Shown here: positions 6,629-13,570 of the stretch, one piece after another
Position numbering within the stretch: position 1 is the stretch's first letter
Layout of the letters: the number at the start of each line of letters is the position of its first letter
Source: Selaginella moellendorffii
Lineage: Eukaryota; Plantae; Lycopodiophyta
Direction of reading: 5' to 3'
DNA length: 64,000 nucleotides
NCBI RefSeq assembly: GCF_000143415.4
Contig: NW_003314340.1
Location: forward strand, 62,001 to 126,000
Translations under genes and position numbers: made by a program
Notes under the pieces: generated by a model
Seen by the model: the letters and a program-made list of their open reading frames with translations, nothing else
Told to the model about the DNA's origin: nothing
Databases searched by the model: none

Positions 6629-7195
6629 ATGGAGGGCAAGATCGATGCCGATGGCTGCACCTATACCAGGATTCGCCGCAAGACTTGCAATACCGTGGAG
6701 GATCCAGAGACGAGGAAGCCGATCTTGAGGTGTGAGAGGCTCGAGCAGCTCCTCCGCCACTGCCCTGGGAGGTAATCTCTATTTCTTTCTTCCAATTTCG
6801 ATCATCATCGATCTAGGAAGCCCGAGGTCGTGGAGTCCAAGAGAGAGGAGACAGAGGAGGACGTTCCAAGCGAGGAGGAGGGCGATCACCAGCACAGCCT
6901 TGGCTCTAGCAGCGGCAATCCATTGTCACGATTCTCCGAGGCGCTGGAGGAGCATCTATCGGGCGAGATCGAGGGATTCATGCGCGCGGCGGAAGAGATG
7001 GCAAACGAGCTGTTTGGGAACTTTGGGATCTTCAAGCACGGCGAGAGAGAGAGGGGCAGCGACGAGGAGAGATTCCACCGGAGAGCTCCATCGCCGCAGC
7101 CATTCGGGCGAGGAAGAAGGGGCGAGGAGATGGAAGGAGAAGAAAAAGAAGGGGAGGATTTCGCGGACTTTCGCAAGGGCTTTAAAGAAGTTTGA
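6629..7195 (+). CDS. Mal d 1-/Fra a 1-associated protein-like, two exons
   Basis: MEGKIDADGCTYTRIRRKTCNTVEDPETRKPILRCERLEQLLRHCPG-intron-PEVVESKREETEED...KEV*; the Cys spacing and 'EVV.S..E.TEED' match the family as I recall it. Confidence 0.7.
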
Positions 7196-7242
7196 GCACA
7201 AAAATTAGGGTTCTTACTTTTAGGGTTCTTGAGAGTTTCTAG

Positions 7243-8377
7243 CTACTGCGCATTGAATCGGTTACACGATCGCCGGATCTCGCCCGCCCCGCCGGTCTTG
7301 ACGCCCAATCTGGAGAGCTTGTCCATGGATGCCGCGAAGGAAAAGAAGAACAGCGCTGGATCTCGAGCGAATAGCCTGACGATTTCCCTGGAGGGGAAGG
7401 AGGCGAGGAGGCTCTCGTCGGATGTGAGCAGCGATCTGCCGGCTTCCAGGTTCTTGAAGTAATGGTTGTCGAAGGTGAAAGGCGCGGCCTTGTCGAAGAA
7501 CTCGATGGCCGTCACAGGGGCTCCTGGCGGGCAGTCCTTCTTGAGTTCCTTCGCGAAGGACGGATCGAGAGAAGGGTCTGTGCCGTCCAGAGAGGTGTTG
7601 ACTCCATAGAGCCTCTGGCTGAATTGCGAGCAGTGGGAGACCCCGAGCGTGTGAGCGCCTGGAAAAAGAGAAGATCATCGAGGCTTTTCGAGCTAGCAGC
7701 TACATATCCATACCAGAGAGCGTGACGAGATCAAGTAAGTTGAGTCCTTTGCTGTGGAAGTTCTTGAGCAGCTCGTCCAGACCAGACCTTGGCGATGGGA
7801 TTTCTCTAAGCGCGCTATCCGCGCGTGACACTGTTCCATCCCTCCGTCCGAGCGCCAGATTCCAGCCCGGCCCTCCCGCCTGGAAGAGTTTATAAAGATC
7901 AAAACAAGGACACAGAAGCATGCTGGAAACTTGCCAGGATCAACATATCTCGAGTGACCATCGCAAGTATATCAGCACACGAGACCACACCCGGGCACTG
8001 GGCTTCCACGGCTTGCTTCGCGAGATCGATCGTATCAAACGCATCCTGGACTAAGTCCCGGTTTGCCACGGAGTCTCTCTCGACCGAGGACTGCGGAGTT
8101 TGGCCGATGAGGATCGATCCATCGCAGCCCTGCATTGTTTGTGGGATTGGCAAACGCGCTCTACCCGATCAACACAAACCTCTACGAAGCAGTCGTGGAA
8201 GAAAAGCCGAAGAACTTGTGCTGGGTGATTGGTCAGCTGCTGGAATCTCCTCAGTGAAACTTGCGCGACGATGGATGCGATGCCTGGGCAGCTCGAGTCG
8301 TAGAAACCGGGCCAGAATTGGTGGGAAGAGCTTGGAAAAATCACTGCGATTGCAATCAAAACAGCCAGAAATCTCAT
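7243..8377 (-). CDS. Class III secretory peroxidase (4 exons)
   Basis: Signal peptide, [10 protein letters not shown]|GCDGSIL, VSCADIL, GRRDG, LSG|AHTLG, FDNHYFKNL, GEIRRSC. Confidence 0.93.
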
Positions 8378-8813
8378 CTTGGTTGGACTCCGCAGCTCAA
8401 GTTACTGTCATGCAATTTAGTTCATTATAATATAAGTGGGATTCTTGAGGTGGACTATTCTGATGAGTGGATCTTATTATTATCTAGCTTTAGCAGTTCT
8501 GGCAATGATTCTCAGGGTTTTGTACCACAAAGTTGCTCATCGAGTAGACAAAGTGAAATTATTGTTTGTAAAAATTGTTTGCTGGAAGTAATGTGAAATT
8601 TCTTCACACCCTTTTAAATTAATGCTAAATCTTAGAATATACTCTATGGACATTCCATATTGCGCTGGAAGTATCTTCTTATTAAAGGTTGAAAGAAAAA
8701 GAAACAGTGACAAAAACGTCTCTCTCTTTCTCTTCGCTCTCTTGCTTTTCCTCTTTCTTTTGCCTCCTGCACATAAAGATTTTGCTATGCAGTCCTTTAT
8801 TTGATTAACTCCC

Positions 8814-10820
8814 TCAGCCATGCTGCTCAAACCCTTCAAGACACTTGAAGAGCGGCTCCATCAGGCTCCCATTGCAGAATGCATCGTATATTTTGTCCAG
8901 GTCCTGCTTGGGAGCTCTTCCTTCCAGGCCACCCCCTGTGAGCATCTCCGTGCCCAGTTCATGACGAACAAACTGGTACAGCGGGTATGAGACGCACTTC
9001 TCTATGATATGAGTCGCAGGTTTGTCCAGGGACTCTTTCCTGGTTGTGGCAATCGCCTCCTCCAGTTTTGGTTTCAATCGATCTTTAAACTCGCCAAATT
9101 TCCTGACCGAGCAGCCCTGCGTGGTGGGATTGGCGAGAAAGACTTGCCTCAGCTTGTTTAGTAGTGTGGAGGAGCCGTCCATTGCATCGTCAATGAAGCT
9201 GAACGTATACTGCTTCTCCACTTCGAGCAGCATGCTCTCAACACAGGCAGCCGGGAAGAACTCATCCCCGATCGAGGAGAGAACTTTCATCACAGCTCCT
9301 TGCAATGCCACCTCCAGATGCCTCAGATCGATCGCCTGGCAGATGCCCAACAAGTACGTGGACAGCATCATCTTGAGAATCTCAGCGGCCTCTTCGGATT
9401 TCCTCGCGGAGACGAGTCCGAGAGAGTTGACTGCCTGATTGTGGTGCTCGGCCGTCTGAACGTGGGTGGTGACGGGATTCGCCAAGTATGCAAGCTCGGA
9501 CATGTAGGCAGCCATGGCAATCTCTGCGCAATGGAATCCATAATCAAGGGACGAGTCCGCACCAGCTGACAGGTTGGAAGGCAGCCCGTTGTTGAAGCTG
9601 GCATTGACCAGCTCCGAGAATTGAGCAAAGACGAGCTTCCCGATTGCGGCCAGGGCGATTCTCACGTTGTCCATCGCGACACCGATGGGAGTGCCTTGGA
9701 AGTTTGCACCGTGCAGCGCCTTGTCACGCGCAACGTCGATCACGGGATTGTCGTTGACCGAGTTGATCTCTCGCTCGATGGAGCGAGTTGCATGGCGGAT
9801 GACTTCGATCTGGGGGCCTAGCCATTGCGGAGAGCTTCGTATTGCGTAGTGGTCTTGCCTGAACTTTTTGAGGTTGTCAACCTGGTTCAGTCTAGCTGCG
9901 GACGCCATGAAAGCGCTGTCTTGAAGGACGTGGTTCATGACTGCCGCAGCTTCGATCTGCCCAGGGTGGCGCTTCAGCTTGTGGATGAGCGGATCTACAA
10001 ACTCGCTGCGTGCGTGGATGACTTCGCAAAACATGGCAGTCAGGACTTCAGCAAAGACGACGAGAACGTTGGCATCGAAGCAAACGAGAGATCCCAGAGC
10101 TGCACCCGCCGAAGTCCCATTCACAAGCGCTATTCCTTCCTTGGGCCGCAGTTCGAATGGAGCTTCAACTCCCGCAAGCTTGAGGGCTTCTTGAGCAGAG
10201 GTGACGCTTCCATCTCTGGTGAAAGCTACTGAATCTGGTCTTCCGGTTAGAACGGCTGCAATGTAGGCCAGCGGCATGAGATCCCCCGAAGCAGTGATTG
10301 ATCCTCGGAGAGGAACTTTGGGCGTAACTTGAGCATTGATGAGCTTGACAATGGCATCCAGGATCTCCCAACGTGTTCCCGAGTAGCCTTGCACCAAACA
10401 GTTGGCCCTCACCAGCATGGTGGCGCGCGTGACATGAACAGGCAAGACATTGCTTGGATTGGTGCCCATGATGCCAGCATTCAAGTAGCGGATTAGCTCC
10501 TGCTGTAGGCCCGAGAAATTTGCCGTCCTTCGATTGCAGTGAGCTCCGAAGCCAGTGGAGATTGCATAGGTATCGACTCCTTTCGCGACACTCTCCATGA
10601 CCCACTCTGCGCATTTGTCCACTCGAGATTTGGCACTCTGGACAGCAAGCTCAACATGGACGTGGTCAGCGCGCCTAGCAACTGCTGTGACTTGCTCGAT
10701 TGTCAGGGCAGTGCCCTCGAGCGCTATCATGCTGGCGTTGTCTAAACCCTTGACCATCCTACGAACTTCCTTCAAGTGGCTATCAACTCCATCCATGGGG
10801 TATGCATCTGCACTTCCCAT
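8814..10820 (-). CDS. PAL: Divergent intronless PAL-family MIO enzyme (aromatic amino acid ammonia-lyase/aminomutase)
   Basis: 668 aa from ATG 10820. MIO motif GSITASGDL plus ALVNGT, NSVNDNP, NFQGTPIG and NNGLPSNL; several active-site substitutions (see findings). Confidence 0.93.
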   Translation of the reverse strand: MGSADAYPMDGVDSHLKEVRRMVKGLDNASMIALEGTALTIEQVTAVARRADHVHVELAVQSAKSRVDKCAEWVMESVAKGVDTYAISTGFGAHCNRRTANFSGLQQELIRYLNAGIMGTNPSNVLPVHVTRATMLVRANCLVQGYSGTRWEILDAIVKLINAQVTPKVPLRGSITASGDLMPLAYIAAVLTGRPDSVAFTRDGSVTSAQEALKLAGVEAPFELRPKEGIALVNGTSAGAALGSLVCFDANVLVVFAEVLTAMFCEVIHARSEFVDPLIHKLKRHPGQIEAAAVMNHVLQDSAFMASAARLNQVDNLKKFRQDHYAIRSSPQWLGPQIEVIRHATRSIEREINSVNDNPVIDVARDKALHGANFQGTPIGVAMDNVRIALAAIGKLVFAQFSELVNASFNNGLPSNLSAGADSSLDYGFHCAEIAMAAYMSELAYLANPVTTHVQTAEHHNQAVNSLGLVSARKSEEAAEILKMMLSTYLLGICQAIDLRHLEVALQGAVMKVLSSIGDEFFPAACVESMLLEVEKQYTFSFIDDAMDGSSTLLNKLRQVFLANPTTQGCSVRKFGEFKDRLKPKLEEAIATTRKESLDKPATHIIEKCVSYPLYQFVRHELGTEMLTGGGLEGRAPKQDLDKIYDAFCNGSLMEPLFKCLEGFEQHG

Positions 10821-11276
10821 TTCACAAGTCCTAGATCTGATCTCACACACACCTGAACCGTCTTCGTTCTAATGGCGAAAAGTAGTCGAAATGGGCTCTC
10901 GTTAGCTCTTTCTACGTGGCTCTTGCTGTTTCCTACGCGTTAAGGGAAAGTTGCCATCGGCATGGCGAGCAGGCAAGATAGGAGTAGGGCAGACAAGCCA
11001 TGGCACGCTACCAGGCGCCGGAAGAACTGCCTGAATGCCCAAGATTCCAAAAGGTTACTCAATAACACAAAGTATGTGACTTTGCATTTTTAACAAAGGG
11101 TAGACTGTCATGGCTGTGAAGCACCAGCTAATCCCCCATGCAATTGAGCTCACCCACGTTCAAACACGAGGGAATTTTGCTCGCCACATTAAAAGTTTAG
11201 CATCAAATTCTTTCTTAACCTTCTATGGTTTATATGAAACTTGATGACATCCAACTATTATGTCTCCACTCATTTA

Positions 11277-12634
11277 TCATTTGGTTTCACAAGACAAGTA
11301 TGCGCTCCACGCGTCTTCGAGGAGACGTCTCAACCTCTCCAGTGTCCCTGTTGGTAAAGTTATGGTGACTTCAATCCCCTGGGGTGATCTTGGATGAGGA
11401 TTGAACATGCAAAGTCCATCCAATCCAAGCCTCTCCAATCCAACATGCCGCACGGCTTCTGGTCTCCCCCATCCCAAATCAATCTCGTAGTACCGGAACC
11501 GCGGCGAGCTCGAGCACAACATGTTACAATTCTTGCCAAGCTTGTCCGCTGCAATGCCCTTGGAGCTAAGCTTCTTCGTGATCCCCTCCATGCCAAAGCT
11601 CGTCGAAACTGCATCCTCCAGCAAGCTTGCAGCATGGCGGAGGCCACCTTTCCGGAGCTCACCAGCAGTCGTCGTTGACACCGCGTGGAGCACTGCATTC
11701 CCAAAGAACTCGTCCGGCAGCTGAGGAGCTAGCCTTTTCCTGCAGTTGGCAGCCATGGAATTGGTGGTGCTCGTGGAATCGGGCAGATCCCTCGCTGCAC
11801 ACATGTTGATCCAGATGTGAGCACTTAGCACTTTGAAACTCGATAACCCGGCGCCAGCCATCTCCTTGATCTTGTCAATGTAGTCTCTCTCGAAGCAGAA
11901 GATTCGACCGCTCATCGCTATGTTACCGGACTTTGGAAGATCATGGCCGCTTGCAACCGGCGAGAAATCACTTGCTCTCGGGTAGTCCAGCTGCTGGGGC
12001 CCGAGATCTCGATCAATGCGAGGAACTTGGCTAATCTCACCTTTGAGACAACTCTCTGCCCAAGATACTAGGAAATGCACCCGGCCAGTTCCATCAGCTA
12101 ATGCATGGTCCGCAGCCCAAAGCCACCGAAATGCCTCCGCACGAGAACCTTGTCACCTAGATGAAATCCAGGGGATGAAATCCTCAAGAAACGCTGGTCA
12201 CTGGTTACCTGGATGCTTAGCAGCGGGCTTCCGAGTGGTGCCGCAGAGCTTCCATACTTGCCACTTCGAATCAGAGCCGAGAAGTCGGGCGATGGCTGAG
12301 AGTAGTCGAGCTTGTCAAGCGGAAAGTCGGCTCTTGCCACTGTCCACTCGACACCAGCGGCATTGCAGTCGATTCCATACGAGTTGCCATCGCTGGAGAG
12401 CGCCAGGCGCCCAGCTGCAGGGTAGAAGTGGAGCAGAACTTTAGAGAGTGAGAGCCTCGCTTGGTGGATCAAGCTCAGGTTCTGCGCGTCCGAGCGAGAG
12501 CCTGGATAGAACGCAACACCTTGCATATAGGGATGGAAGATGTATTTCATATCAAACTGGGAGAGAGGAAGGAAGCAGCTTGGAGTTGGGGATAGCGGCT
12601 CAAGCATGAGGCGCTCAATCTCCTCGACCTTCAT
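11277..12634 (-). pseudogene. BAHD acyltransferase, 2 exons, with a +1 frameshift just before the HXXXD motif (pseudogene or sequencing error)
   Basis: LSKVLLHFYPAAGRL, conserved IQ|VT intron, HALAD motif, FFGNAV and DLGWG. Exon 2 in frame hits TGA unless one T of GCTTTGG (~12119-12121) is removed. Confidence 0.85.
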
Positions 12635-12774
12635 GATCTTTGTGGAGTGTAGAGCCCTTTCAAGAAATCGCGTTATATTGTTCTCTTCAAACGATTAGAT
12701 TTTAATAACTAGACAAGATTTTCTTAGCTGCGAGGAAGATCTCCGCTGGAAAATGGAAACGGAAGCACGCTCGC

Positions 12775-13570
<796 letters not shown>

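Follow-up and report, generated by a model that had tools for sequence, protein, structure and literature searches.

The question raised by this locus is whether a gene that NCBI labels just "phenylalanine ammonia-lyase [Selaginella moellendorffii]" still encodes an ordinary phenylalanine ammonia-lyase (PAL). The gene lies in a 64-kb stretch of Selaginella moellendorffii DNA, which is referred to below as the window; all coordinates are given on it. From the letters alone, an initial annotation had described the product as a PAL-family enzyme with a remodelled aryl pocket, possibly a tyrosine aminomutase (TAM), a tyrosine ammonia-lyase (TAL) or an enzyme for a new substrate. Judged from its sequence, the PAL-like enzyme is one that retains the complete residue set for 4-methylidene-imidazole-5-one (MIO) chemistry and in which the aryl-binding pocket and the inner loop around the catalytic tyrosine (Tyr110 in parsley PAL) are rebuilt; it is probably no longer an ordinary PAL. 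The gene itself was already known, being present in the databases as "PAL". What is new is the combination of pocket residues, which no other PAL-family MIO enzyme examined was found to have. Literature searches on the accession numbers, or on Selaginella together with aminomutase, returned nothing on this gene.

The open reading frame (ORF) runs without interruption from 8814 to 10850 on the minus strand. According to both the ORF listing and direct translation, its first ATG, at 10820, opens a protein of 668 aa.

8817-10820, minus strand: intronless coding sequence (CDS) of the PAL-like MIO enzyme, 668 codons, followed by a TGA stop at 8814-8816

The predicted protein is identical to a gene call on scaffold GL377644.1 of assembly GCA_000143415.2. 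It exhibits a high scoring match to the Pfam family Lyase_aromatic (PF00221; E-value = 1.4e-145, 486 bits against a cut-off of 27.3 bits) over residues 39 to 504. Among proteins of solved structure, the best match is parsley PAL (1w27, 744 bits), followed by Taxus phenylalanine aminomutase (PAM, about 600 bits) and fungal PAL (about 350 bits). The canonical PAL of S. moellendorffii scores 1021 bits against the same parsley enzyme. An AlphaFold2 model computed from a 61-sequence alignment has a mean predicted local distance difference test score (pLDDT) of 88.5 and a predicted template modelling score (pTM) of 0.91. In a Foldseek comparison, this model matches parsley PAL (PcPAL, 6f6t) with a template modelling (TM) score of 0.91 and Taxus PAM (2yii) with a TM score of 0.92, at a root-mean-square deviation of about 2.0-2.2 Å. 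By these two analyses the protein has the PAL-type fold with a C-terminal shielding domain.

Residues were mapped by aligning the protein with parsley PAL 1w27, the numbering of which (PcPAL numbering) is used for equivalent positions. Pocket residues were assigned from the cited literature and by alignment with PAL and PAM proteins of solved structure. The following residues of the catalytic core are kept:

10284-10292, minus strand: MIO-forming triad Ala177-Ser178-Gly179, within GSITASGDLMPLAY
Tyr85: the catalytic tyrosine, PcPAL Tyr110
Leu109: PcPAL Leu134
Leu113: PcPAL Leu138
Asn234: PcPAL Asn260
9837-9848, minus strand: Tyr325 and Arg328, PcPAL Tyr351 and the carboxylate-binding Arg354
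Ile434: PcPAL Ile460
Glu458 and Asn461-Gln462: PcPAL Glu484 and Asn487-Gln488

The equivalents of PcPAL Asn384 and Phe400 are also kept. The residue set of the MIO superfamily (the triad and the equivalents of Tyr110, Tyr351, Arg354, Asn260, Asn384 and Phe400) is complete in the sequence.

Conservation was assessed in a set of 116 land-plant PALs, ranging from bryophytes to angiosperms. The changes in the pocket and in the inner loop are located as follows:

10485-10487, minus strand: selectivity switch Tyr112 (TAC), in ELIRYLNAG, in place of PcPAL Phe137
10527-10568, minus strand: inner (Tyr110) loop YAISTGFGAHCNRR, with Tyr85 kept and the rest remodelled
9528-9533, minus strand: His430-Cys431, in DYGFHCAEI (His CAT at 9531-9533), replacing PcPAL Lys456-Gly457
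Ile230: in place of PcPAL Leu256
9432-9449, minus strand: Glu458-His459-His460-Asn461-Gln462-Ala463, with the changes Gln485His (His459) and Asp489Ala (Ala463)

Canonical plant PALs (PcPAL1, 1w27; S. moellendorffii XP_002981929.2) share with the PAL-like enzyme the fold, the MIO triad, the catalytic residues and the eukaryote-type shielding domain, at 52-57% identity. The PAL-like enzyme differs from them by Phe137Tyr, Leu256Ile, Lys456His, Gly457Cys, Gln485His, Asp489Ala and the replacement of Thr119-Ser120-His121 by His-Cys-Asn; it also lacks about 10 residues of a loop, and its termini are shorter. Gly111Ala, Val112Ile and Thr113Ser complete the changes of the inner loop. The switch residue is Phe in 114 of the land-plant PALs and Val in the other two. 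Gly111, Thr113, Ser120, Lys456, Gly457 and Gln485 occur in 116 out of 116, and Thr119, His121 and Asp489 in 115; the PAL-like protein differs at every one of these positions. Lys456 is kept also by six fungal PALs and by the Taxaceae PAM-like protein. Thus, the protein has a Tyr-Leu switch instead of the Phe-Leu switch of canonical PAL, and lacks the invariant Lys456-Gly457, Thr119-Ser120-His121, Gln485 and Asp489. Tyr137, His456 and Cys457 together with a His-Cys-Asn inner loop were found in none of the other PAL-family sequences examined. Over the entire alignment, 275 columns are at least 97% invariant in the 116 PALs, of which the PAL-like protein keeps 220 and changes 55. The pattern of changes is therefore real and far from chance.

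These results bear directly on what the initial annotation had read from the sequence. Its statement that the MIO triad (ASG), the catalytic Tyr and the carboxylate-binding Arg are kept is confirmed by the alignment to parsley PAL. The Tyr and His codons to which it had drawn attention, in ELIRYLNAG and DYGFHCAEI, are present by direct translation. The inner loop that it had regarded as altered is indeed so, with changes at sites that are invariant or near-invariant in the 116 PALs.

The shielding domain is affected as well.

9243-9275, minus strand: deletion of about 10 residues in a shielding-domain loop (SSIGDE..FFPAA), with the K-K-T-L-T-T stretch gone

The corresponding segment is 18 residues long in the PAL-like protein and 19 in the Taxaceae PAM-like protein, against 27-29 in the 116 plant PALs and 15-22 in five aligned fungal PALs. 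The K-K-T-L-T-T stretch lies where a PAL phosphorylation site has been reported. In the alignment with parsley PAL, the C-terminal shielding domain exhibits two internal deletions (about 10 and about 8 residues), the protein ends without the G-x-P tail, and some 26 residues are lacking at the N-terminus. The shortened C-terminal region noticed at the outset is therefore real, but it is modest, and the N-terminus is shortened too.

Several PAL-family enzymes with other activities provide a basis for comparison. Position 137 is an established determinant of substrate choice in this family: the Phe144His change raises the TAL activity of an Arabidopsis PAL, and His123Phe removes that of sorghum PAL1 (2025 review). 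Grass phenylalanine/tyrosine ammonia-lyase (PTAL; Sorghum SbPAL1, 6at7), like the PAL-like enzyme, possesses a polar switch residue able to contact a ring hydroxyl. However, it combines a His switch with Lys456 and a canonical inner loop, whereas the PAL-like enzyme combines a Tyr switch with His at position 456.

The TAMs of rice and maize (OsTAM1 and ZmTAM1) resemble the PAL-like enzyme in being PAL-derived, in their Tyr switch, in their non-Lys residue at position 456 and in their annotation as PAL. A highlight article on these enzymes (PMC13586772) ties TAM activity to Tyr125/Asn446 in OsTAM1 and Tyr128/Asn449 in ZmTAM1, in agreement with the statement of the initial annotation that rice TAM has Tyr at the switch and a residue other than Lys at the second site. 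According to the same article, Tyr128His in ZmTAM1 sharply lowers beta-tyrosine and Asn449Lys abolishes it, and ZmTAM1 retains PAL and TAL activity. The grass enzymes have Asn at position 456, where the PAL-like enzyme has His430, and the inner loop is remodelled in the latter as well. The PAL-like gene does not belong to the grass TAM clade: it comes from a lycophyte, and apart from the allele no protein, angiosperm PALs included, is more than 57% identical to its product. Its Tyr switch has therefore arisen independently of the grass enzymes, and the independent evolution proposed initially holds as far as the switch is concerned.

Taxus PAM (3nz4, 2yii) and its Taxaceae relative, a PAM-like protein (P0124, 1079 bits to 2yii), are highly diverged PAL paralogues, as is the PAL-like protein, and are likewise changed at Thr119, His121 and Phe137. 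The Taxaceae protein also has in common with the PAL-like protein the deletion in the shielding loop and a W-to-F change near the C-terminus. The PAM-like protein departs from the canonical residue at 29 of the 55 invariant sites that are changed in the PAL-like protein, where 14.8 are expected (p = 4e-6); at nine of them the two have the same residue. Common descent, a convergent loss of constraints peculiar to PAL, or the two together could account for this resemblance. There are also clear differences: Taxus PAM has Cys at the switch, not Tyr, it keeps Lys456-Gly457, and the two proteins are 46% identical. The PAL-like protein does not reach the cut-off of the NCBIfam model taxol_Phe_23mut (TIGR04473; 618.6 against 1250 bits). 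The inner-loop residues Ala77, Ile79, Cys89 and Leu97 of PAM correspond to Val82, Thr84, His94 and Phe102, two of which are hydrophobic. In PAM, hydrophobic inner-loop residues make the loop less flexible, and hydrophilic replacements give the aminomutase features of a lyase (PMC9002059).

Because the pocket changes are located exactly at the known specificity sites 137 and 456, they favour a new specificity. We favour, at about an even chance of its being right, a lineage-specific PAL paralogue with a new function, most likely that of a lyase and/or a 2,3-aminomutase using tyrosine or a substrate resembling it. In such an enzyme, Arg328 would still bind an L-aryl-alanine and the MIO group would still attack its amino group. 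Tyr112 and His430, with Cys431, Ile230 and His459, would replace Phe and Lys by a polar, hydrogen-bonding end of the pocket, so that a substrate with a substituted ring would be preferred, L-tyrosine being the simplest case. The reaction would then lead either to elimination, as in TAL, to give p-coumarate, or to migration of the amino group, as in TAM, to give beta-tyrosine. Migration would be made more plausible by the hydrophobic Val82 and Phe102, which occupy two of the four positions that stiffen the Taxus PAM loop. Some residual PAL activity would be likely.

The only cluster mate of the PAL-like protein is XP_002985337.1 (EFJ13467.1, D8SPS4), which is 97.9% identical and is encoded on scaffold GL377632.1. 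The gene order on this scaffold and on GL377644.1 is identical (ribosomal protein S4-type, BAHD, PAL-like, class III peroxidase, EAF), so the two copies are regarded here as haplotype alleles of one locus. The two CDSs differ by 1.2%, that is by 24 nucleotides, of which 10 are synonymous and 14 non-synonymous; five of the 14 replacements fall within the first 28 residues. The allelic dS is 0.021 and dN 0.009 (dN/dS = 0.43), and non-synonymous differences are below neutral expectation (p = 0.04). Taken together, the RNA, allelic, conservation and modelling results point to a folded enzyme on which purifying selection has acted for most of its history, with present-day constraint being only moderate.

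9849-9851, minus strand: polymorphic codon 324, CAC (His) in the window allele, which reads QDHY (9846-9857), and CGC (Arg) in XP_002985337.1, which reads QDRY

Arg at this position is invariant in the 116 plant PALs and in fungal PALs, and RNA reads carry both bases at 9850, hence both alleles of the codon. The QDHY motif, which had been listed initially as a departure from QDRY, is thus present in the window allele, but since the other haplotype has QDRY it amounts to a polymorphism only. The haplotypes are far more diverged at 10847-11270 (5' untranslated region (UTR) and upstream intergenic sequence) than in the CDS, with many single-nucleotide differences and several insertions or deletions of 9-33 bp. 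At 10847-10882, a 36-bp replacement between the haplotypes is seen in RNA reads.

RNA evidence comes from three stranded RNA-seq runs, about 12% of each being sampled, and from assembled RNA contigs. The gene, which the initial annotation had allowed might be unexpressed, is transcribed in the three runs. Sense-strand reads cover the whole CDS continuously, with the first mate on the plus strand; reads of the ribosomal protein gene and the BAHD gene, both neighbours on the minus strand, are oriented likewise. Depth over the gene is 1-6 (bin means mostly 2-5), and is about zero at 8479-8675 and 11040-11236.

8700-11041 (approximate), minus strand: PAL-like transcript by RNA-seq depth, with a 3' UTR that ends in a CT-rich tract and a 5' UTR that reaches to about 11041

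An RNA contig of 2141 nt is colinear with 8769-10846 and free of gaps, and therefore the gene has no intron. The gene of the canonical S. moellendorffii PAL XP_002981929.2 is also intronless, and a retrogene origin was rejected for this reason. Both alleles are transcribed. The 3' UTR contains a CT-rich microsatellite (8719-8770) with a 49-bp length difference between the alleles; many RNA reads end loosely in it, and low-complexity reads raise the apparent depth here.

In a word search of 5.8 billion proteins, the closest non-self proteins are 54-57% identical and come alike from Sphagnum, Anthoceros, Ginkgo, Marchantia, lycophytes and ferns; apart from the allele, nothing above 57% was found there. 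An exhaustive scan of 1.84 billion cluster representatives gave a canonical PAL at 56% as the closest match. Other Tyr-switch proteins were sought by a word search with residues 78-122 (inner loop and switch), which returned the query itself only. A fragment search with residues 60-260 for pieces of a transcriptome orthologue returned ordinary PAL fragments only. Proteins of Gossypium, Musa and Hibiscus gave top-scoring hits, and were rejected as special relatives when BLAST alignments revealed gene models with partial internal duplications that inflate the bit score. The trees described below were built without these duplicated models and without grass TAM sequences. The search of representatives also matched, in two stretches and with 740 bits, a 2535-aa protein of a Candidatus Omnitrophota metagenome-assembled genome ('phenylalanine ammonia-lyase, partial'; P0123), which probably represents a chimera or a contamination among the gene models of that metagenome bin.

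A number of points weigh against a new, tyrosine-related function. His at position 456 has no characterised precedent. Even in grasses the residue pair does not suffice for TAM activity: according to PMC13586772, rice LOC_Os11g48110 has the Tyr and Asn residues and is without TAM activity, and a sorghum protein has them too, in a plant that accumulates no appreciable beta-tyrosine. Moreover, proteins of the noncanonical PAL clade (PALnc), about 60% identical to canonical PALs, are bona fide PALs (El-Azaz et al. 2026, PMC13751647). The PAL-like protein might likewise be essentially still a PAL, a diverged and perhaps less efficient or differently regulated isoform in which the pocket substitutions merely tune the kinetics. 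It scores 835 bits against the NCBIfam equivalog model phe_am_lyase (TIGR01226), well over the cut-off of 519 bits, and it keeps the catalytic residues as well as the hydrophobic Leu134, Leu138 and Ile460. The retention of PAL activity by ZmTAM1 in spite of its Tyr switch (PMC13586772) points in the same direction, and the missing K-K-T-L-T-T loop is more in keeping with a change in regulation than with one in chemistry. However, the Taxaceae PAM-like protein passes the same cut-off (733 bits), and TIGR01226 is therefore uninformative on function. PALnc proteins are comparable to the PAL-like protein in their identity to canonical PALs (about 55-60%) and in having gone unnoticed under a PAL annotation, but their active centre is conserved (PMC13751647), whereas here the pocket is rebuilt, with changes at about ten positions that vary little or not at all among the 116 PALs, including the Lys456 that even fungal PALs keep. 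In addition, S. moellendorffii already possesses a tandem array of canonical PAL genes. We consider a mere PAL isoform possible but rather unlikely. Other observations would suit a decaying or crippled copy, still transcribed and open while selection on it is relaxed and it degenerates into a pseudogene, or a protein with a non-catalytic role, for instance in hetero-tetramers with canonical PAL. Allelic constraint is only moderate, as the dN/dS indicates, and in the window allele alone two sites that are invariant elsewhere have undergone radical replacements, His284Arg and Arg324His. Expression is low, about 1/100 of that of the neighbouring ribosomal protein gene; the word, fragment and representative searches found no orthologue in any other species; and the adjacent BAHD gene is frameshifted in the window haplotype. 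The 55 changed invariant sites are scattered across the whole protein, beyond the pocket, which fits a general relaxation too. Yet neutral sequence encoding a 44% diverged protein would not hold a frame of 668 codons open in both haplotypes. The protein retains 80% of the invariant sites, with every catalytic residue and the MIO triad among them, its non-synonymous differences are fewer than neutrality predicts, and its model folds confidently. Decay or a non-catalytic role thus appears improbable.

As to the origin of the gene, the simplest reading, with which the data are compatible, is that a duplication specific to lycophytes was succeeded by fast divergence. In a tree without outgroup, the branch leading to the two alleles measures about 1.9-2.4 substitutions per site and joins the tree in an unresolved region that contains Isoetes and Selaginella PALs and fern PALs. 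Approximately unbiased (AU) tests reject none of the constraints that group the PAL-like proteins with Selaginella PALs (p = 0.075), with Selaginella and Isoetes PALs (p = 0.25) or with all lycophyte PALs (p = 0.23). The PAL-like gene and Taxaceae PAM might instead be survivors of an old PAL paralogue lineage that pre-dates the 10-residue loop of the canonical clade. In a tree with fungal outgroups, the PAL-like proteins, the Taxaceae PAM-like protein and the canonical clade (Shimodaira-Hasegawa-like approximate likelihood ratio test (SH-aLRT) support of 92) form a basal trichotomy. In a careful tree without outgroup, PAL-like and PAM fall together and are separated from all of the 38 canonical PALs (support of 92/92). 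The tree constrained to this pairing has a log-likelihood 2.1 units above the free tree. The loop deletion common to both, otherwise found only in fungal PALs, and the nine identical replacements at canonical-invariant sites would also fit. On the other hand, both branches are very long, and the program flags their join as a possible meeting of long branches. When the PAL-like gene is removed, PAM attaches near moss PALs, and the PAL-like gene by itself attaches near Isoetes, Selaginella and fern PALs; such different placements of long branches analysed singly are a signature of long-branch attraction. The identity between the two proteins (46%) is below that of either to canonical PALs, the canonical Selaginella PAL outscores the PAL-like protein on the PAM model (670 against 619 bits), and nine identical residues among 29 co-changed sites are not clearly beyond chance. 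A real clade with Taxaceae PAM was not accepted, as each branch attaches elsewhere without the other and the AU tests do not discriminate. Lycophyte origin and grouping with Taxaceae PAM may be equally likely, the latter being possibly a long-branch artefact. We give little credence to the survival of an old lineage, and less still to the wider proposal that the PAL-like enzyme is a true aryl-alanine 2,3-aminomutase or Tyr-specific lyase which shares with Taxaceae PAM an old paralogue lineage without the canonical loop insertion. If this were true, plant MIO aminomutase chemistry would go back to early vascular plants, instead of having arisen separately in yews and grasses.

Plant PAL-family enzymes that act beyond Phe deamination are rare (Taxus PAM, grass PTAL and the TAMs of rice and maize), and each was hidden under a PAL annotation. 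The PAL-like gene is a new candidate outside seed plants, in a lycophyte. Should the favoured new function prove to be that of a TAL or a TAM, it would represent an independent third or fourth plant origin of tyrosine use or aminomutase chemistry, and would offer a natural experiment on the residues that control the lyase versus mutase outcome. A 2025 review states that a monofunctional TAL is still to be identified in plants. If, on the contrary, the enzyme is an ordinary PAL, Lys456 and the Thr-Ser-His loop would be dispensable.

Two genes next to the PAL-like gene could be related to it by theme:

11277-12775, minus strand: BAHD acyltransferase gene with a 52-nt intron (12155-12206), the nearest solved relatives being hydroxycinnamoyl-CoA transferases
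7243-8377, minus strand: class III peroxidase gene model, from gene calls

A mini-cluster in which a source of aryl acrylate is combined with a hydroxycinnamoyl-type acyltransferase and a phenol oxidase is thematically plausible. The idea is weakened by the frameshift of the BAHD gene in the window haplotype and by the antisense orientation of the RNA over the peroxidase. The frameshift results from a 1-bp insertion near 12119-12121, upstream of the catalytic His of the HXXXD motif, and the gene call is only 212 aa long; the allele on GL377632.1 is intact (435 aa), with HALAD and DLGWG motifs. Both forms are found among the RNA reads, so the insertion represents a genuine, segregating null allele rather than a mistake of the assembly. 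Over the peroxidase (7100-8438), stranded RNA reads are opposite in orientation to those of the PAL-like, BAHD and ribosomal protein genes, and an RNA contig of 2851 nt is colinear with the genome and unspliced. These suggest an antisense transcript coming from the left rather than peroxidase mRNA in these samples, its source being possibly the 3' end of a plus-strand gene (173 aa) at about 6629-7195. The ribosomal protein S4/S9-type gene (12695-13570, minus strand) is expressed very highly, with a depth of 300-400 in the sampled reads, and provides an internal control of strandedness.

The tandem array of canonical S. moellendorffii PAL genes is located on GL377616.1 and its haplotype partner. 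Its copies are 97-99% identical, and the proteins compared (P0289, P0297, P0284, P0293, P0091, P0294 and P0296) exhibit three types of active site. One is canonical, another has a swapped pocket (Ser109Ile, Phe137Val and Leu256Phe), and the third carries Tyr110Leu in addition to these three changes, and hence is without the catalytic tyrosine.

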